DNA of 64,000 nucleotides, taken from the NCBI RefSeq assembly GCF_000143415.4, contig NW_003314275.1:873955-937954 (forward strand), given 5' to 3'. Positions 5,600 to 60,744 of this stretch are shown here, piece after piece. A program made the translations under genes and the position numbers. This stretch comes from Selaginella moellendorffii (lineage: Eukaryota > Plantae > Lycopodiophyta). Under the pieces are notes generated by a model. It did no database searches, was not told the DNA's origin, and saw nothing but the letters and a program-made list of their open reading frames with translations. How positions within the stretch are numbered: position 1 is the stretch's first letter; each line of letters starts with the position of its first letter.

Positions 5600-6211
5600 T
5601 CAGCTTGTTGCTCTTAGAGATAAAGTTTGGGATTTAGATTTCGACTCATCTAGAGAATAAAACACAGATACGACCACTTCAAGTTCATTTTCAAGTTCAT
5701 TCATGCACAAGTTCAAATGAGCCAAAGATCGTGATCGACTAAAATTCTTTTCGTGATTGGATCCATTGCAAAAGGAAACAAGTTTGTCAACTTTCGAGAG
5801 AAAAAACCAGCACTGGATAATCCCTAGACAAAAGAATAAAGCAAAGGTATGAGAAACAAAGCCGAGAGAGTACCATCCTCTGCGACAGATAGATTGGACT
5901 TTATCACCTCCTCCAGTTAGATAGAAGATAAAACTCAAAGAATTTCTGAATAACTCTGCGGAGCCTGTGAGGGCCATCTTGATTGTAAATCTAAGCTCCC
6001 ATGTATCGCAAGCGGCCTCTTTGACATCTGGATGTGGCAAAACCTGTGTCAAATATTCAAAGATCCAAGAAAAAATGAGAGAGAAGAACTTACTGCATCC
6101 ACCAAGTCCCGTGCTCTTCTTCGGGAGCACAGGTGCTTTACATTGTGCCTGCTCTGGAAAAAAATAACAAACTGCTTGCCACATCCTCCAGCGCAGGCCC
6201 TTGAAAATCAA
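5600..6211 (-). other. Hypothetical or degenerate ORF region, with a more eroded copy at 1-330
   Basis: 203-codon open frame with no recognisable motif and a non-ATG start. The homologous segment in copy A carries deletions. Confidence 0.2.
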
Positions 6212-9200
6212 GCTGTGATTGGTGTTTCCCTAGCGATTGAGATGAATCAAAATCAGCTCTTGGCTGGAGCGCCAAGGTGCAGCGCCAGAGCAACATCTCT
6301 ATGAAAAACTTTCGACACTTGCCATTCCTTCCTCGCTCTCGTGAGCCTTGGTCTGTCGCAAAGCCTTAGAGGCTTTCAAAACAATAGCACGCCCCCGGTG
6401 TGGAGTGTCCTTACGCCCCGGCCGGAGGTGGCCACCGCTACCGGGGCCTCTGCCCGCTGATAGAGCACGCCGCGAACGCCCGTGGCGTCAGGATGTGACC
6501 AACAGCGCCGACCGCCCGGAAAGCAATGGCTGTCCAATCTTGGCGTCGGGAAAGTCGCGAAACTATGTTTGTCTTCTCAAAGCATTTCCTTCTCTATCGC
6601 AGTGATATGTTGCGACTGGGAACAGTTTGGTCCTTCGAGAAAAACGAAGGATCAAGCCAAGGACAATTATTCTTTCTAGATTGCATTTGCTTTTTCATTT
6701 GGAAAGCTGTCTACATGCACCATCTCCGAGCCAGAGACAATTATTCTCCTGAATGTCCTTTGCTTAACCAAAAACTTCCAAACTAGAATGGATTTAAGTT
6801 CTTGAAAATCATGCCGAAATCAAACATGGCATAATCCTAGCACAAACCCAAATATATTTTGAAACCCACTACAAACCCTTTGAATATCATTTCTTCTCCA
6901 TGTTTTTGTTTGGTAGTTGTACAAAGCCAAAAAATCTGGATGTGCAATCAGAAGTATGCTGTTATAAGCCATACATACAGGTTCCACAATATTGTTCCAT
7001 TGATGAGTAGTTTCTTCAACAAAACCTGTAGAATCCAGCTTCAATAAATAACATCTAAACTTGGTTGAAGTTGTCACAAATAAAGATTTTGCTGTTACTA
7101 CAAGGGTATCAAAGTAAAAATATTCATCTGTCATACGATAGCCACGATGGTCCTGTGCCCGTGTTGTCACAAGATTAGATAAGTTGCTATCACATAAATT
7201 GAGGCACCACACCTCAACATCCCCTGAAAACCCTATGCAATATATATATAATTTGTTATCCCTGAAAATTGTATCGAATAACGTTTCACTAGGCACCAAA
7301 ACTTCGTTCCACAATCCTGTTTTTCCTGAATCATATACATAAATCATGACTCCCTGCTCCATGTCCCTAAGTACACAGGCCCAATAACGCTCTCCAGAGA
7401 AGTCCATCCCCATTGCAGTCTCCTTAGAACATGGTTCACCATCCAAATAAAGTGGTGGGAGCATCTTAGATGCTCCAGTGAGAGGATTCCAGACCATAAA
7501 ATCTTTTCCTCTCATCCCAAGTATCAAACCACCGCTAGAGTTCAAAACACGATCCATGTTATGCTCCATGAGAACCCAATCACTTGCTTCTTGCCCCGTA
7601 AAGGGATTGCATCTGAAAAGAGGCCCTTCACTATCCAGATCTTGACCCAAAACATGAGGAGGACTACGATTCAAGTGTTGTGTGTAGTGAAGAGCAGCAA
7701 ATCCCGGTGTCTCTATGAGATCCTTCCATTTCTTGCACACGGCTCTCGCGCGCCACAAAGCAACTGCTGGCAAGCGCTTGAGCACCTCCTCAACTGGGAT
7801 CCAATCCATGACTACCCTCACCTTGACCTAGCCTAAACGGCGATAGGGTTTCACCTTTCTTGCTTTAAAACAAGGGAAAAGAGGAGAGAACCCAGGAAAG
7901 GGTGCATTAGAATGCTGAAAACAACGACCGTGGTCTGGATCACGAGCTCGCAAAGAAGGCCTTGCAGAGTTATATCCTGTGGTCACGGCCATCTTTGAGC
8001 GCCACGCTCTTGGACTTATCTTGGTAGACGAGTGTTTTCTTTTATTCAAGGTACGTTCTCCAGTGGCGATTGAACCAGAAGAAAGCGCTGTTCTCGGGAC
8101 TTCCTGTAGGCACTGGAAAGCAAACTTACACTCTGACGAACTTTAGACTCGCTCGTGTCCTTCGTCCATGATCCAGGAAGATAAACTTGTCGGTGTTAAG
8201 TGTCAAGTAGCCGATAGCTCTCCAGACCGGTTTTAGCTGACACGATCCTGTGCGCTTGGAAACGAATGAAACTTCAAGTTCAGGTGAATCTCCATGCATT
8301 CTCGTGCAAGTAAGCCATTCCCATCAACTCCAAGACGTTTTCCGCGTTGTCAGGATAGATCCATCTGTCAACCGTTTCCCATATGCTCGTAGATACCATC
8401 CTTACCGAGCAATGAAAGTTTGCGAAACCAAAAAATTACCAAACCGAGCAGTATTCCAGTTAAGGCAACACTCCACACAGCAGAGAGCTTCTCACAAAGA
8501 GGCAGTAGCAACACTAGTTAGTAGCGTCAAAACAAGTAGCTGGATGAATCGAGCCCGTTACCTACGTCTTTGGCGAGCATCATCACAGATTGTGGAATCC
8601 TCGTGCTTTGCTGTTCTAAAATTTTTCGAAGCGTTCCTTCCTTTCTTTGCTTTGTGAAGGTTTTGGATGAGATGTAGTAGTTGTAAGGGAATTCTGTTCA
8701 TGAGAAAGATTGTACCACAACCTGTTCTTCCTTCTCCAGAAAATGAAGCTCCTGAATATATTTGCCATCCGATCCCAGTAACCTCGAGAATCGGCAATGA
8801 AGACTCGAGTAGTAAACACTTCGTGAAGATGTGAGATTGTTTCAAGAAAAGCTGAGTGTTCAGATGTTGCATGCGTTTTCACATGTCGGGTTCTCCAGCC
8901 ACTTCTCTTGTATCTTCCAAAATGCTTTGCTCGGATGGCCTGATGTCAAAAAAGAAAGTAACGAAACCTCTTACAATATCTGCTAGCTTTTCCACAATTG
9001 CCTGGAGTCTCCTTTTTTCGCAATGCAACCGTCACTTCGTTAAGCTGCATCTTGCACCGTCAATAGGAAGGCATTGCTTTCATCTGCATCACTAGCTTTG
9101 GACGCAATGTAGTGTTGAGAACAACTCCGAGTTGTTGAAGTTTTCATAGTCATTAGGATCGAGCCAGCGAATACGCGACTGCAATCTAAACTACTTACCT

Positions 9201-9808
9201 GATTAGTTAGGCACACTATATAGTGTCAGAGACCTTCGCCTTGCTAGCTTCTACAAAGTGACCTTTGGTACCATCACTTTGGCACCAGAACATCTGTGTA
9301 GTGCGTCTCCAATGCTGTTAAGACGGCATAAGCCACCGCCTATATGTTAAAAAAACATTGAGAATCGATAATAATCTGGTCACCCTTACATTCACTAGAA
9401 CAAATGTGTACCCTGGCCAGGAGCTGATAATCACGTCATCCTCGCCAAATGTTTCTGTCATTCTGTCATAACCTCTTCCACAAAAGGCGCAGTACCGTGT
9501 CCTGGAGGAATTTGTCAGATAAGCAGAAGTGCTTAACTTGCAAACTTCCAATAATTTTTTTCGACGTGAAAAAGGCTTTACCTCCGCCATATTCCTTAAA
9601 TACAAAAGTCCTGCTTCTTACTTTACGACAAGGGGAGCCGATTGCAAACCTCCACATTATAGATGCTAGCGAGCTGCAAACAACAGCTTGAGCCTGCTAC
9701 AACGGAAGTTCAGAGTAGAGTACCTCGGAAGTACATGTTGGTTGTGGATTTCCACGTCCGTAGGAATCTCTGAGATTTTTCATTTAAAGGTATGCGTTGA
9801 TCCACCAA
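5781..9808. repeat. Tandem segmental duplication, copy B
   Basis: Direct-orientation homology to 1-3885, offset ~5.8-6.0 kb. Confidence 0.95.
6820..7809 (-). CDS. F-box protein, paralog of 857-1840, 329 aa
   Basis: ATG at 7809 (MDWIPVEEVLKRLP). About 90% amino-acid identity to copy A by eye, plus a 2-aa insertion (AQ). Confidence 0.9.
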   Translation of the reverse strand: MDWIPVEEVLKRLPAVALWRARAVCKKWKDLIETPGFAALHYTQHLNRSPPHVLGQDLDSEGPLFRCNPFTGQEASDWVLMEHNMDRVLNSSGGLILGMRGKDFMVWNPLTGASKMLPPLYLDGEPCSKETAMGMDFSGERYWACVLRDMEQGVMIYVYDSGKTGLWNEVLVPSETLFDTIFRDNKLYIYCIGFSGDVEVWCLNLCDSNLSNLVTTRAQDHRGYRMTDEYFYFDTLVVTAKSLFVTTSTKFRCYLLKLDSTGFVEETTHQWNNIVEPVCMAYNSILLIAHPDFLALYNYQTKTWRRNDIQRVCSGFQNIFGFVLGLCHV

Positions 9809-53961: not shown

Positions 53962-54245
53962 AAAAAACTATGGTTCTTCTACTAAAGAAATTCAATCCTT
54001 TTCGTTGCCTAGGGGAAGGAAAAGTTATATTAGGAAATATAATATCCCGTTAATAATCATACTCCTAACGAAATTCTATTCCCGTGAGGATAGCCATTGT
54101 TTCCTTTCTGTCCTCTAAAGAGAATGAAAAATTATACTCGAACATAATTCAATGCCATCTCGAAGTTTCGTAAAATTTCAAACTGATACTACTTGATTTC
54201 CTACGATCTCACCATATTCAAAACCGTTGATTGTTCCGATTGATA

Positions 54246-54879
54246 TTAGAAAAGTATTTGCGCCAAGAAAAACATCACCGTGGTGACAAGAGGAGAGAAA
54301 TCTGGCAAAAAGGACAAAACAAAAGAAAAAAGAAACCAATACATTTTAATTACTTTTTCCATTCTAAAAAGCTTACCAGATCGACCAGCACTGTTCTGCT
54401 CGAGCAAAGCTGCAAACACACAAAAAGTTAGGCCTGGAAAAAGAAAGAACCAAAAAGGAGAGGATAAACATGGAAGTGAAAAAGCGAAGGAACACACTAT
54501 CACCTACAAGCAAGGAATGGCAGGCAGAGAAAAGAGAGGAGAGATTACTAGGACAGGCACTGGTGTTGGAGTCGAGCTTGCAATGCGTGGGAAGCATGAC
54601 GGCGTTGGTGATATTGATCCCGGGAGTGGAAGTTACACCGCCAGTGGAGGAGAGGAGCTCGCACAGGCAAACGGGGCTGTGCTGATAGATGTAGTGGAGC
54701 CCCCGGCAGCACCTCGAGCCTGGAAGATCTCTCTTTCCCTCGATGTAAGTGATGCACGGCTGTATCCTGGCCAAGCGAGCTGTGCACTGCTTGTCCTCCC
54801 CAAGGACCAACTGTACCACCAGGAGCAGCAGCAACACTAGCATACTCACTCGCGCCGAGGAAGACAAAGGAGAAGCCAT
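54246..54879 (-). CDS. LTPG: GPI-anchored non-specific lipid transfer protein. Exons 54879-54549, 54409-54377, 54301-54246
   Basis: Signal peptide, eight-Cys motif C..C..CC..CLC..C..C, and a short tail ending in hydrophobic FSPLVTTVMFFLAQILF*. Confidence 0.88.
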
Positions 54880-55475
54880 TCTCTTCCTTCCCCGAGCTCT
54901 GTCCTTGCGATCGAAAATGGAAATGAGACTCTACCTCGGCTCGGCTCGGCTTGAGCTTGAGCTTGAGCTGTGCTCCACCGCTTTTTGAGACTCGCTCCAC
55001 CTCCTCCTCCTCGAAGGAAGAACTTTGAGGCACCTGAAAATCTGCTGCCTCTGCTCCTGAAACTGTGTTCTTGTTGCAGAGTAAAACTTGGTGTTTAATC
55101 GCTTGCCACTGCGGGAATTGAATGGAAACGTGTCAGGTAGCATTTAAGAAGACAACTACCACGCTGCACTAACTGCACCACCTTTGGCTGGCGTATATGC
55201 GATTCCCATATGTTTCTCGAAGAATTCAACTTTATCAATTTTTGGAGCTCGTCCTGTCTTTTTGTCCGCGTCAACAAATTCCGAATGATCATTAAATAAT
55301 CAACGCTTTGAGCTGATCAACCTGGAAAGAAACCAAGTACAAGATGAAGTTTCCATTTATGTAACAGAGCAAAGAAACACCAGTCAGTGCACGCACCTCA
55401 CTACAAAATAGCAATCGCTTTTGTCTGGTCAAGCCTGAATTATAAAGCACGTCCATCGATGAGAAACAAGAAATT

Positions 55476-57257
55476 CTATAACGGAGGAGCAACAAAACGA
55501 ACCTCATTGTCCTCCTCCTCATCGCCTGCCGAATGGATCATGTTGGACAAAACTACGTAACCCGAGCAGTCGTTTGGATCCAGCTCCAGCAACCGTTCAG
55601 CTGCACGCTTGCCACACTCGACGTCTCCGTGAACGCTGCAAGCTCCCAGCAGAGCAACCCACAATCCCCGATCACTGTCCATGCTCCTGAGAAAGTTTTC
55701 TGCCTCCCTCAACCATCCAGCACGTCCTAGCAGCCCGACCACACAGCCACAGTGCTCCAACCCGGGAACCAGCTCGTCGTCCACGAGCATCGCGTAAAAG
55801 TTCTCACACCCATCGGCCAAGAGCCCCGCATGGCTGCAAGCCCAGAGAACACTGACGTAGGTGACTTCGTCGGGATCCACACCAGCTTGTTTCATCTTCC
55901 TGAATAGGTCCACGGCCATACTGCTGTCCCCGTGTTGCGCATAGGCATTGATTAGCGCGGTCCACGAGATGGAGTCCTGGTGGTCGAGGCTGTCAAACAC
56001 TCGTTGCGCGTCTTGAAAGCTTCCACACTTCCCATACATGCTCACGATGGCGTTTCCAAACGAGCTCTGCAACGCAGCACCAGTCTCGGCGCTGCAAGCA
56101 TGAACCATCCTCCCCTCGGCCAGCGAGCTCGTGTTCCCGCAAACTTCCAGCATGCAGAGAAGTGTCACGAAGTCAGCCCTCACGCCTTCCAGTTGCATCC
56201 TCAGAAACAGCTTCAGCGCCTCAACGTCTTGTCCATGCTGAGAGTAACCAGTGATTATCACAGTCCAGCTGACCACATTCCTGTGTTGCATCCTGCTGAA
56301 AACCTCCCTGGCCTTGTCCAACCTTCCACACTTTGCGTACATGTTGACTAGCGCATTCCCAACCTGAAGCTCGTTTTCAAACCCGGCTTCAACAAGGCAC
56401 GAGTGAATCGCGTCCCCGGCCCTGAGATCATCACACGCGGTGAGGGTGGCAACGTAAGTCACGCTATCACTTCGGACTCCCTCCTGTTGCATGGAGTGAA
56501 AGATCTCCATGGCTTCCCTGTTATGCCCGTGTTGAGAATAGGCGGTAACCATCGCAGTCCAGGACACTGTACTCCGGGGACTCATCGCGTCAAACATTTG
56601 CCGGGCACTCCACGGACAGTGGCACTTGCTGTACATGGTCACTAAAGCCGTTGCCACGAAAGTGTCCGACTCGATGCCAAACTCCCGTATGCATGAATGG
56701 ATCTTCTTCCCTTCCGAAAGTTCGTGAGAGCCACTTAAAACTCCCAAAACTACGATGAACGTGATCCTGTCAACTTTGGCGCCCTCCTGCTGCATCCTCC
56801 AAAAGAGCCGGAGACAGTACCTCGAGTGCATACGCCCGGCTTGGGCATAAGCTGAGATGAGAGCGTTCCAAGACACCGAGTTGTGCTGCGGCATAGCTGC
56901 AAAAGCCCGACTTGCTTCTTCCAAACTTCCACACCGCCCATACATTCGCACGATGTGGTTCCCCAAGATGAGGTTCTCTTGGAGACCTGCCTGAACTGCG
57001 AAACCATGAACTTTCCTCCCTTCGACCAGAGCGTTTGCGTTCCCACATGCCTGGAGAGCTCGAGCATATGGACCCGGATGAGATGGTAGATTATCCGGGT
57101 CCAAAGCATCCACCAGTCTCGTCAAACTGCTGCTTTCACTGGCAATTTGCTCCAACCGATCAAACAATCCCTTGAGCTGTTGCTGCTGTCCGGTCTTCTG
57201 GATTCTTGCCAAAGGAGCGGGAGTGACCACCACCGGACCACGAAGAACATCGCCCAT
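55476..57257 (-). CDS. PLS-E class PPR protein, about 593 aa, intronless, no DYW domain
   Basis: P-L-S triplets (GNALVNMYAKCGRL, RNVVSWT), ACSHAGL, EHCGCVVGLLGRAG, ending after GYVVLSN. Confidence 0.92.
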   Translation of the reverse strand: MGDVLRGPVVVTPAPLARIQKTGQQQQLKGLFDRLEQIASESSSLTRLVDALDPDNLPSHPGPYARALQACGNANALVEGRKVHGFAVQAGLQENLILGNHIVRMYGRCGSLEEASRAFAAMPQHNSVSWNALISAYAQAGRMHSRYCLRLFWRMQQEGAKVDRITFIVVLGVLSGSHELSEGKKIHSCIREFGIESDTFVATALVTMYSKCHCPWSARQMFDAMSPRSTVSWTAMVTAYSQHGHNREAMEIFHSMQQEGVRSDSVTYVATLTACDDLRAGDAIHSCLVEAGFENELQVGNALVNMYAKCGRLDKAREVFSRMQHRNVVSWTVIITGYSQHGQDVEALKLFLRMQLEGVRADFVTLLCMLEVCGNTSSLAEGRMVHACSAETGAALQSSFGNAIVSMYGKCGSFQDAQRVFDSLDHQDSISWTALINAYAQHGDSSMAVDLFRKMKQAGVDPDEVTYVSVLWACSHAGLLADGCENFYAMLVDDELVPGLEHCGCVVGLLGRAGWLREAENFLRSMDSDRGLWVALLGACSVHGDVECGKRAAERLLELDPNDCSGYVVLSNMIHSAGDEEEDNEVRFVAPPL

Positions 57258-58954
57258 CACAAGTCTTTTCGGAAGAACATCTCCGCGAGTTGGTCTCTCA
57301 GTTCCTGGCCCTGCTGCTCCTCTAAACTAGCACACTCGCCGTTGCCTGCCTGTAGATGGTGGTGTTGTTGGTGGTATCTTACAAGGCTGTCCTCGTCCAG
57401 CCTCAGTGTCTGGAGAATGCTCTCGACCGGGATCTCGTTCTTGTCCAGCAAAACATTGTGTAGGATGCAGCAGGCTGCGATGACTTTGGGAACAAACTTG
57501 ACGTTGTGCTTCACGCACTTCGCCAGTATCTCGAACGTCTCCTTGAGAATCCCGAAGCTTTGTTCGATGTGGATCACCGCCCGAACATGCCTCCTGTTAA
57601 AACTCTCAGCCATCACAGGCGTTTCAGCCTCCTGGTAGCGGACCAGCAGCCACGGAAGAAGCGGGTACTTGTCACCACCCACAAGATAGTGCACCGAAGA
57701 GTTCTCAGACTGCGCCGCCGAGAGTAAGTTCGCTCCAGTTTTCAGTAGACCAGGACTGTGGGGATGCTGAGCATTGCAGTGTATATCCAGAAACCTGTAC
57801 GAGGTGTCGCAAACAGCCTGGAGCGCGATCAAACAGCTTGGTACGTCTCCCGAAGCCATAACTTGAACATTCGTCGTACCAATCGCACCAACGCAATTCG
57901 GAAGCTCGCACTTGTCGACAAACCCAGCAGCCGTCTGCCTGAGCCTCTCGGGAAACCTCAGACAGCTTCCAAAGTGCTGGTTGATCGCCCTGACCACGTC
58001 AATGACGCAGCTCTGCGAGCTGCTCACACCGATTCCAAACTTGTCGCCTATGACGTGCAAGTCAGCCCCGCTGGTAAGCCGGTAGAGCGCGGCACCCAGC
58101 CTGCATGGAACCGGAATCGGCGACCTGAAGGTGGTGACTTTCTTGTTGAGCAGCGGCTTCAGCTGGTCGCAGATCCACAAGAACGTCTCCCGAGACATCT
58201 TGAGAGCGTTGAACCAGCTATCCCGGTCGTGCACCTCGAGCAGGAACTTATCAAACCAGGCTGGGTTTCTCGGCTTCACCCACCACCCAGCATCCGTGGA
58301 AAGCGCCAGAGAAGCCGACAGCATTGCACTTTGGAAGAAGAGCGCGTTGAGCTCGTCATCCTCTTCTTCCTGGCGTTTCTCTTCGTCCTGGTGACGAGCG
58401 AGACCGGTTTCCAGTCCAAACGACGCAGGACTTACGTTGATAATCTGCTCCACAGCACTCGCGGCAGAACAAGCTGTCGCAACAGCAAGCCTGAGCTTCT
58501 TCCGCCGGTCCATCTGTCCATATCAAAAACAACTTCGTATCACTACCACCAAAGGAGAAAATCGGTAGGAAAAAATCTCCCAGGTCGCACTGACAACCAG
58601 CAGGACAGATCGTCGTCACAAGAGTGAAAAGTCAAAAAACAAAGAGCTCGTGCGATGGCGAATTGAATAAGAAGGCGCCAATCATTCATGCGTCATGACC
58701 GAATCAAACAGTCGCAGACTTGCAGACTTGCAGATGTGAGCGCCGATCGATAGAATTAAGACCTCACGAACAAACAATCGCCATTTCACGAGCGATCGCT
58801 CGAGACAAAACAGTTTCACGACCAAAACTCGAGGGAAATATGCGAGAAGAATCCATGAAAATGCGCAGCTAAAATCTAGAGCGCTCTGACACCGCGTTCT
58901 TACCTTCGGATGCACGCCATCGAAGATGCAGCTCTCCTCCTCCCAATCCGCCAT
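57257..58954 (-). CDS. ALP1: ALP1/HARBI1-like domesticated Harbinger transposase nuclease, predicted inactive. Exons 58954-58904 and 58513-57257
   Basis: KMSRETFLWIC, RLGAALYRL, LPNCVGAIGTT, LQAVCD, YLVGGDKYPLLPWL, IEQSFGILK, ACCILHN. A 51-nt in-frame first exon ends in AAG|GTAAG and the acceptor is CAG|ATG. Orthology to ALP1 is tentative. Confidence 0.88.
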
Positions 58955-59196
58955 ACCCTAGCACTGCGACTTCTTCTCCATCGCTACAAGCAAGCCAGCA
59001 GCCCTTAGGTCAAAATCTTTCACAAGGATTTTTTTTTTTTTTTTCTTCGTTTTAACATCACAATATCTGTACATCAGGGGAAGAGAATCGAAAAACATTC
59101 TCTGGTATTTTCTCTAAGCTCACTCTCTTCTAGCATCGATTCTCCACCGATCTTTCGCCGAGAAGAAAATGCGATGGCCGCCGCCGCGCGAGAAGA

Positions 59197-60744
59197 TCAC
59201 GAGTAGAGCATCGCGGTGGACAGATCGTAGGCAAATCCCTGCTTGGCCCGCGGGATGGGCGATCGGCACGTACTCCGGACGTCGTCCTCGTCCTCGAATT
59301 CCAAGCGCGGCCTCTTCTTGGCGGCGGCGGCGGCGGCGGCGGAGCTCTGCTGGATCTGGAGCAAGATCTCGCTGATGTTGCTGGGCACCGACTCCAGCTT
59401 CATGGGAGGAGGATTGATGATCCTGGGCTGCTGCAAAGAGCTCGGGGGAGTATTGGCAGCCTGGAACGATTGGGTGTTGAGGGATTGATCGTAGGCCCAG
59501 GGATTCACCTTGCTCATCATCACCATGGTCGTGTTGCCGGTATTGTGGAACTTATCGCCCAAGAAGGTCTGGAAGCCATAGCCGCCGCCGCCGCCGCCGC
59601 CACCATAGCCGCCGCTGGTAAGTGACGAGGATTGATGGTGGTAGTGGTCAAAGCTCTCGGAAGTTTGCTGCTGCTGGGACGAGGATTCGAAGAGTTCCTG
59701 CTGCTGAGATGGCGGAGGAGCTGACGATAATCCTCCTACGAACTGCGTGGCTAGCTGCGCCGACGAGGATGATCCGAAGGGTGGGATTTTGTAGAGGCGA
59801 GAGTTGTCGTCGATGTCGGGGAGAGATGCTAGAACGTCGTCGAGCTCCTCCTCTGGCGGCTCGGATTTCATGCTGCTCCTGGGCGTGGTGCTGCCGGATA
59901 GCATCGGCTTGAATGCTCCACTGCTCTTCTTGTAAATCCGGCACAGTACCCAGTCGTCGAGCTGGAAAAAAAATCGATGAGAAAAACTGGAAGAAATGAC
60001 CTCACAAGACACGATCTCTCGAAAGAATCGATGATTCACCATGAAAACTCTAGAAGAAACGAGGATTTCGGCAAAGCATGGAGGATTTCACCACAAAGAA
60101 TCCCAGAAAAGCAAGGATTTCATGGATTTCTTGAGAGATCGAGCCCGACGATTCAAGCAAGAAACGCGAATTTCACCAGGAAATCGAGGATTTCACCACA
60201 AAGAATGCAAGAAAGAAGCCATGACCGAGGCGATGGCGGAGATTCTTCTTACCCTGAGCGATCCTTTCTTGCGCATGGCCGGAATCGCTGCGGCGGCCTT
60301 GGCGCTGCTATCGGCGAGGCGGTACTCGTGCATGATCCAATTCGTCTTGGATCCCTTGGGCGCCTTGCCCTTGTAGAAGACGAGCGCCTTCTTCACCCCT
60401 ACCTTCTTGCCCTTGCTAAGAATGGGCTTGTCCGTGCCGGTGGCCTTCCAATACCCGGATGCGGCAGCCCGGTTGGGGCGCGCGCCATTGGGGTACTTCC
60501 GGTCCCTGGGGCTAAAGAAGTACCACTCCCTCTCCCCAAACAGGGCCTTCTCCGGGAGCTCCCACGGATCAAACTTGTAGAGATCGATCTCGGCGATGAT
60601 AGGGATCGCGAATGGCCGGCTCTCCGCCTTGATCGCCAGGTAGCTCACGACGAGCTCCTCGTCCGTGGGGTGGAATCGAAAGCCCGCGGGGAGATTGAGC
60701 TGCTCGGATGGAGGCGCTGTGCGCGGCTTGCCGCCGCTGTCCAT
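59197..60744 (-). CDS. NAC transcription factor (ATAF/stress-NAC-like), 418 aa. Exons 60744-60253 and 59961-59197
   Basis: [68 protein letters not shown]. Confidence 0.95.

Follow-up and report, generated by a model that had tools for sequence, protein, structure and literature searches.

Introduction

Nuclear genes of land plants are held to be monocistronic, and the few accepted exceptions have a tiny first open reading frame (ORF). Two long, differently framed ORFs in the genome of the lycophyte Selaginella moellendorffii, joined by a single base that serves the stop codon of the first and the start codon of the second, form a layout that is unusual for a land plant. They lie on the minus strand of a 64,000-nt stretch of DNA termed the window (NCBI RefSeq assembly GCF_000143415.4, contig NW_003314275.1, positions 873,955 to 937,954 of the forward strand; all positions below are those of the window unless an accession is given). 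The upstream ORF encodes a Harbinger-derived protein called ALP1-like, which is the automatic NCBI name and is not a statement of orthology to Arabidopsis ALP1, and the downstream ORF encodes a pentatricopeptide repeat (PPR) protein.

Several described systems offer a comparison. In caliciviruses and in influenza B, termination-reinitiation that depends on a termination upstream ribosomal binding site (TURBS) occurs where stop and start codons overlap at the end of a long first ORF. The Selaginella locus shares with them the stop-start pentanucleotide overlap after a long ORF1, and differs in being a cellular plant gene with no UGGGA motif in the 200 nt upstream and no stable structure at the junction. 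We know of no domesticated Harbinger gene described as abutting a PPR gene. The domesticated plant Harbingers ALP1 and HDP1 resemble the upstream gene in their DDE_Tnp_4 fold, degraded catalytic triad, lack of terminal inverted repeats, single copy, purifying selection and conservation across land plants (PMC5339849).

Among green algae, nuclear bicistronic loci use leaky scanning past an ORF1 that is short (median ~300-600 nt), poor in AUGs and in a weak start context (PMC11291117). They are like the present locus in that a single spliced nuclear RNA carries two complete ORFs, in different frames and at a very short distance from each other, and some Auxenochlorella loci even have overlapping stop and start codons (PMC11291117); the Selaginella ORF1, in contrast, measures 1308 nt, has 15 AUGs ahead of the PPR start and begins in a strong context, and the algal loci come with single-molecule and proteomic proof whereas the locus here is known from contigs. 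The CDC26-TTM3 transcript is likewise a land-plant nuclear RNA with two conserved ORFs (PMC11291117, PMC9768141), but its upstream ORF, CDC26, is very short and the pair is kept from algae to angiosperms, while ORF1 here is long.

Readthrough transcripts with intergenic splicing have been described in Arabidopsis. There the second gene mostly retains a start site of its own, translation of the second ORF is rare, and nonsense-mediated decay removes the long RNAs (Kurihara et al. 2022, PMC9768141). Similar to these, the Selaginella RNA extends across same-strand land-plant neighbours, has introns spliced between the PPR stop and the LTP-like gene that follows, and has a first-ORF stop far upstream of exon junctions, so that sensitivity to nonsense-mediated decay is expected. 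Unlike in Arabidopsis, there is no intergenic region or intron between ALP1-like and PPR and no room for a separate poly(A) site, which would make the long form obligatory for ALP1-like and not a by-product.

Data and comparisons

RNA evidence consisted of assembled transcriptome contigs from four runs belonging to four studies, placed on 54200-60150; such contigs cannot show 5' ends. Since they skip minus-strand GT..AG introns here and in neighbouring genes, the contigs are taken to derive from RNA, and the boundaries of the downstream introns were refined to canonical sites. Selection was estimated from the differences between two haplotypes, with binomial p values against neutrality. Protein searches were queried with the unspliced ORFs or with the public models P0001 and P0009.

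The stop-start overlap and its transcripts

The minus strand reads ...AAA GAC TTG TGA at the end of the ALP1-like ORF, with the PPR ATG overlapping the stop: the TGA occupies 57259-57257, the ATG 57257-57255, and the A is common to both codons. This one-base overlap, which a first-pass annotation had proposed from the letters alone, is borne out by the window sequence and recurs as the same TGATG in the other haplotype of S. moellendorffii, GL377602.1 (L001), which is 97.7% identical in DNA to the window over the region and has the same gene order around the pair. Gene calls on GL377602.1 place ALP1-like at 6001-7710 and PPR at 7710-9538, the 1-nt overlap thus being already contained in the NCBI annotation. 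The ALP1-like ORF is 99% identical to the S. moellendorffii 'protein ALP1-like' model (P0001, 435 aa) and the PPR protein is 100% identical to a 586-aa public model of the same species (P0009). The anatomy is already present in public gene models and hence not new. A literature search found no paper linking Selaginella with nuclear bicistronic mRNAs or with the ALP1-like/PPR pair, and the pair is a new, undescribed candidate for land-plant readthrough or bicistronic RNA, of extreme geometry. An assembly error or a frameshift masking a fusion is ruled out, as both haplotypes and the RNA contigs of the four runs agree without any indel.

It can be seen from the RNA contigs that the junction is transcribed. 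One contig per run is colinear with the genome over 55503-58513 in 4/4 runs, extending more than 1 kb past the TGATG in either direction without a joint, indel or frameshift. The bridging contigs are spliced on both sides, lacking the intron 58903-58514 upstream and the introns 55502-55435, 55396-55322 and 55181-55109 downstream. At 57235, 57218 and 57180, runs X6 and X12 carry the variant letters of the L001 haplotype, and therefore both alleles are expressed with the same structure. RNA crosses the TGATG joint, then, and contig continuity is not proof of one molecule for both proteins. Of the explanations that the first-pass annotation had listed, an RNA of dicistronic structure holds at contig level in four studies; a spliced ALP1-PPR fusion finds no joint near the junction, and a -1 frameshift finds neither heptamer, structure nor indels. 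The two that are left, termination-reinitiation and a PPR start site within the ALP1-like exon, are inseparable by contigs.

The composition of the unit bears on where the first mRNA can end. From 59060 to 55100 the minus strand has no TATA or AATAAA-like hexamer. AT content is 38-51% over the PPR ORF and first becomes high, at 57-65%, in 55500-55200; the only ATTAAA begins at 55099, and contigs break at 55051-55080, after this ATTAAA, in three runs. Because no AT-rich or poly(A)-signal-like region precedes ~55500, the ALP1-like mRNA probably cannot end before the PPR ORF, and the RNA of bicistronic structure would therefore be the ALP1-like mRNA itself. Two long selected ORFs without a spacer likewise mean that the mRNA of the first gene must contain the second gene. 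Between the ALP1-like stop and the 3' end of the long RNA lie ~1.8 kb and three exon junctions, so that this RNA is expected to undergo nonsense-mediated decay.

Both ORFs are under purifying selection as estimated between the haplotypes (Table 1), which strongly argues that the PPR ORF is translated, and the two appear from these sequence comparisons to be independently selected nuclear genes standing head to tail.

Only the two haplotypes of S. moellendorffii are documented to share the pair. The overlap does not extend to Marchantia polymorpha, where a SNARE gene on the opposite strand, and not a PPR gene, comes after the ALP1-like orthologue. Two Logan contigs with ALP1-like relatives also contain no PPR, and the protein collections searched contained no closer ALP1-like or PPR orthologue. 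The M. polymorpha orthologue stands in tandem with a longer DDE_Tnp_4 gene of 807 aa (AP031352.1, L002 2538-8551), located ~2 kb upstream on the same strand.

Apparent readthrough into the LTP-like gene

The bridging contig of run X12 runs on through 54549-55108 into the spliced coding exons of an LTP-like gene (ATG 54879), and in the other three runs short contigs tile the PPR-to-LTP gap with 30-nt overlaps. The interval from the PPR C-terminus to the LTP-like ATG (within window 54301-55503) has three GT..AG introns of 68, 75 and 73 nt, which are spliced in contigs. ALP1-like exon 2, the PPR gene and the LTP-like coding exons are linked by one spliced contig of run X12. A secreted LTP-like protein is very unlikely as a third cistron, and because of this the contigs here are seen to merge genes which surely have their own start sites. 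By analogy, the step from PPR to LTP-like resembles the Arabidopsis readthrough with intergenic splicing, and the step from ALP1-like to PPR does not.

Proposed routes to translation of the PPR reading frame

We regard it as about an even chance (a probability of roughly 0.5) that most of the PPR protein comes from a shorter RNA started inside ALP1-like exon 2. By the contigs and the sequence, the ALP1-like mRNA runs through the PPR ORF, consisting of exon 1, a 3-kb exon with both ORFs and a tail divided by three short introns, and in part reads on into the LTP-like gene; this long RNA would serve ALP1-like and would probably be a target of nonsense-mediated decay. A nested start site for the PPR gene would lie in ALP1-like exon 2, probably in its last ~200 nt. 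On the nested RNA the PPR AUG would be either the first or preceded only by a mini-ORF of 7 codons ending on the same UGA, and this mini-ORF, opened by the internal ATG at 57280, would act as an upstream ORF if the RNA started between ~57455 and 57281. Reinitiation after a 7-codon ORF is efficient.

Three lines favour the nested start, namely what is generally known of how reinitiation depends on ORF length, the data on Arabidopsis readthrough and the control provided by the contigs that reach the LTP-like gene. Translation of PPR from the long RNA looks hard owing to the 435 codons (1308 nt) of ORF1, the 15 AUGs ahead of the PPR AUG in the spliced transcript and the strong context of the first of them at 58954, with G at -3 and +4. 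The nested start also has evidence to contend with. No start site inside ALP1-like was observed, the contigs being unable to show 5' ends; a minus-strand motif scan found no promoter-like motif in ALP1-like exon 2; and the exact one-base overlap in both haplotypes, which a nested promoter does not need, best favours termination-reinitiation.

Termination-reinitiation proper, in which ribosomes ending ALP1-like at the UGA of a bicistronic mRNA reinitiate on the overlapping PPR AUG, is possible though doubtful. The one-base overlap kept in both haplotypes, a spliced RNA colinear over both ORFs in four studies, and a PPR ORF under purifying selection despite no visible promoter space all agree with it, as do a PPR AUG in good context (G at -3 and +4) and a 241-nt junction region that folds less well than shuffled controls (z = +1.54). 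Output of PPR protein would be low, which may suffice, and reinitiating ribosomes could possibly protect the long mRNA against nonsense-mediated decay. Stop and start codons overlap in some green-algal bicistronic loci too, but the mechanism there is leaky scanning past a short, AUG-poor ORF1 of weak context, the opposite of this locus (PMC11291117). Efficiency of reinitiation drops steeply with the length of the first ORF, as is established knowledge and is taken up in the algal study too (PMC11291117), and ORF1 here has 435 codons; the pair is moreover absent in Marchantia, and contigs are no proof of single molecules. A reinitiation of the viral TURBS type is not supported, since UGGGA (TURBS motif 1) is lacking within 200 nt upstream of the junction and no stable structure is formed. 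The more far-reaching proposition, that reinitiation at UGAUG after a 435-codon ORF yields an unrelated PPR protein without a viral TURBS element and might represent a wider use of shared mRNAs in the compact Selaginella genome, is in our judgement rather unlikely.

It is improbable that the PPR ORF goes untranslated, as a passenger of the ALP1-like 3' untranslated region, for example an old retrocopy, with the overlap being coincidental. A protein without DYW domain and with a truncated E motif, an N-terminus with no clear transit peptide, two of the six nonsynonymous differences falling in the first 14 codons, and the absence of any close orthologue or paralogue (best other match 39-43% identical) would fit such an origin. 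Against this, both haplotypes keep the whole ORF of 586-593 codons, free of indels and with a pN/pS of 0.17 (p = 0.0006), its 99.1% identity between haplotypes exceeds the 94-97% of neighbouring non-coding DNA, and it is flanked by neither a poly(A) remnant nor a target-site duplication.

Still more remote is a single ALP1-PPR fusion protein arising through a -1 frameshift or through alternative splicing around the stop: the PPR frame is indeed -1 relative to ALP1-like, with no stop in the 25 codons that lead up to the ATG, but the last 40 ALP1-like codons hold no X_XXY_YYZ slippery heptamer, no downstream structure is formed, the four runs have no joint near the junction and no RNA indels, and no DDE_Tnp_4-PPR fusion occurs among the best 120 of 4825 PPR relatives or among the ALP1-like relatives examined.

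Other routes were set aside more briefly. Leaky scanning is implausible with 15 upstream AUGs and a first AUG in strong context; stop-codon readthrough meets a frame 0 that closes again after 42 codons; and for alternative splicing of the exon 1 donor to an acceptor just before the PPR start, there is an in-frame AG on the stop of the PPR frame, but the joint is present in 0/4 runs. A transposon with a captured PPR gene was likewise rejected, given the lack of terminal inverted repeats and target-site duplications, the single copy, the same neighbours in both haplotypes, and the ALP1-like orthologues in Marchantia, Riccia and Ginkgo.

The ALP1-like gene

Within exon 2 the ALP1-like ORF spans 58513..57257 (-) and comprises 418 codons and the TGA, to which exon 1 adds 17 in-frame codons from the ATG at 58954-58952, giving a protein of 435 aa equal to public model P0001. 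Position 58954, set by the first-pass annotation as the outer limit of its region, proves to be the true ALP1-like ATG, located in a separate 5' exon beyond the intron 58903-58514. RNA contigs end at ~58975 on the 5' side, with adapter sequence beyond 58975 in run X1.

Intron 1 is also covered unspliced (58535-58933) by low-depth contigs in 4/4 runs, with haplotype-type differences that include a 10-nt insertion after 58870; these contigs could be intron retention or pre-mRNA. A 7-codon upstream ORF (ATG 58981, TAG 58960-58958, minus strand) ends 3 nt before the ALP1-like ATG and in frame with it; as the X1 contig end at 58975 lies inside this ORF, it may or may not be on the mRNA.

The Pfam search placed a DDE_Tnp_4 domain (PF13359) at residues 232-353 of the ALP1-like ORF with E = 5.4e-15, and an exhaustive HMMER search gave 4861 relatives at E <= 1e-3. 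The closest group is 35-39% identical and comprises proteins of Ginkgo, Marchantia polymorpha (Mp2g14130), M. paleacea and Riccia. When compared with HARBI1-like proteins that keep D-D-E, the Selaginella triad has its first D replaced by G, its second D lost and its E kept; every member of the close group from Ginkgo, Marchantia and Riccia is without at least one of the three residues. No terminal inverted repeats flank 54800-59400, and the gene forms the only such cluster in Selaginella, i.e. a single copy. The earlier designation as a domesticated Harbinger nuclease is thereby upheld on fold, degraded triad, lack of inverted repeats, single copy and purifying selection, and the gene is predicted to be an old domesticated and catalytically dead Harbinger derivative.

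The family motif E-x-R-x-Q-L-x-E stands 12 residues before the Selaginella ALP1-like stop, and its relatives stop no more than a few residues from this motif. Because relatives end near the same motif, the PPR ATG is considered to lie at the native end of ALP1-like, the upstream gene not being truncated.

The PPR gene

The unspliced PPR ORF (57257..55476, minus strand) encodes 593 aa, and its frame is closed 25 codons upstream of the ATG. The next in-frame Met, at about residue 105, falls within the first repeats; the first reading of the sequence had likewise placed it inside the repeats. Splicing of the 68-nt intron 55502-55435 takes out the last 8 PPR codons and the TAG (55478-55476) and substitutes one codon and a TGA at 55431-55429, resulting in 586 aa, exactly the length of the public model; run X6 retains this intron. 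The lower limit of 55476 given by that first reading is accordingly right as the stop of the unspliced form and does not hold for the spliced form.

Tandem P, L and S motifs were matched in Pfam by PPR_2 (3e-56), PPR (2e-55) and PPR_1 (2e-30). The E motif PF20431 (E = 4.5e-12) is matched over profile positions 1-44 of 63 only, the protein ending inside the motif, and the Pfam search gave no match to a DYW domain (PF14432) in the PPR ORF. A DYW domain encoded by the three downstream exons was considered and rejected, all three frames being closed. The protein is thus predicted to be of the PLS class, with a partial E motif and no DYW domain. By composition only, the first ~30 residues hold 4 basic and 1 acidic residue, and residues 31-60 are acidic. 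The PPR protein has 4825 relatives at E <= 1e-30.

Further apparent joints inside the PPR repeats (window 55841-56323, 176-481 nt) have just 21-22 nt on one side and loose ends that run into unlike sequence. The joints 56040->56323, 55841->56323 and 55842->56019 and the loose end at 57188 were rejected as introns, their sides of 21-22 nt falling in PPR repeats or a CAG run, and are read as cross-matches of paralogous PPR transcripts.

Feature coordinates and neighbouring genes

Table 1. Features of the ALP1-like/PPR unit in window coordinates, in order of transcription, with the comparison of the two haplotypes where it was made.
Feature	Position	Strand	Description	Haplotype comparison
ALP1-like exon 1	58904..58975	-	ATG 58954-58952, 17 codons; joint 58513->58904 in 4/4 runs	
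Intron 1	58514..58903	-	390 nt, GT..AG	94.0% DNA identity; gaps present
ALP1-like coding part, exon 2	57257..58513	-	DDE_Tnp_4, degraded catalytic triad	4 nonsynonymous, 5 synonymous; pN/pS 0.23; p = 0.03; 99.3% DNA identity; no indels
Internal ATG 57280 to common TGA	57257..57280	-	last 7 ALP1-like codons; from the AUG listing	
TGATG stop-start overlap	57255..57259	-	one bridging contig per run, 4 runs	present in both haplotypes
PPR ORF within exon 2	55503..57257	-	PLS-class repeats, partial E, no DYW	6 nonsynonymous, 10 synonymous; pN/pS 0.17; p = 0.0006; 99.1% DNA identity; no indels
68-nt intron	55435..55502	-	GT..AG, contig joint	
Exon 3	55397..55434	-	38 nt, spliced-form stop TGA 55431-55429	
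Downstream intron	55322..55396	-	75 nt, after PPR stop	
Exon 4	55182..55321	-	non-coding, AT-rich	
Downstream intron	55109..55181	-	73 nt	
Exon 5 / spacer to LTP-like ATG 54879	54881..55108	-	sole AAUAAA-like hexamer of the unit, ATTAAA 55099-55094	
3' non-coding region				97.3% DNA identity; gaps present

Tight spacing is met elsewhere in the window. Upstream of the pair on the same strand lies a NAC (NAM-domain) gene (window 59022-59197 for its 3' part) whose coding sequence ends at 59197 and whose RNA contigs reach ~59056 beside an A-run, leaving less than 100 nt to the ALP1-like 5' end at ~58975, so that the spacing is extremely tight here too. A second tight same-strand pair on the minus strand is made up of a Na+/H+ exchanger gene with its stop TAG at 63478-63476 and an agmatine deiminase (PAD_porph) gene with its ATG at 63444-63442; the gap is 31 nt and is the same in the other haplotype (L001 1417-1453).

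Significance

Overall, the ALP1-like/PPR locus is small and lends itself to direct tests, and many public data sets show its expression. If the PPR gene uses a promoter inside the upstream coding exon, it would be a clean case of extreme gene packing with regulatory DNA within coding sequence. If instead the PPR protein is translated from the long RNA, a cellular eukaryotic mRNA would be shown to reinitiate efficiently even when the first ORF is long; such reinitiation would give promoter-less PPR copies a route to gain expression, and would point to a way in which new copies in the huge lycophyte PPR families come to be expressed.

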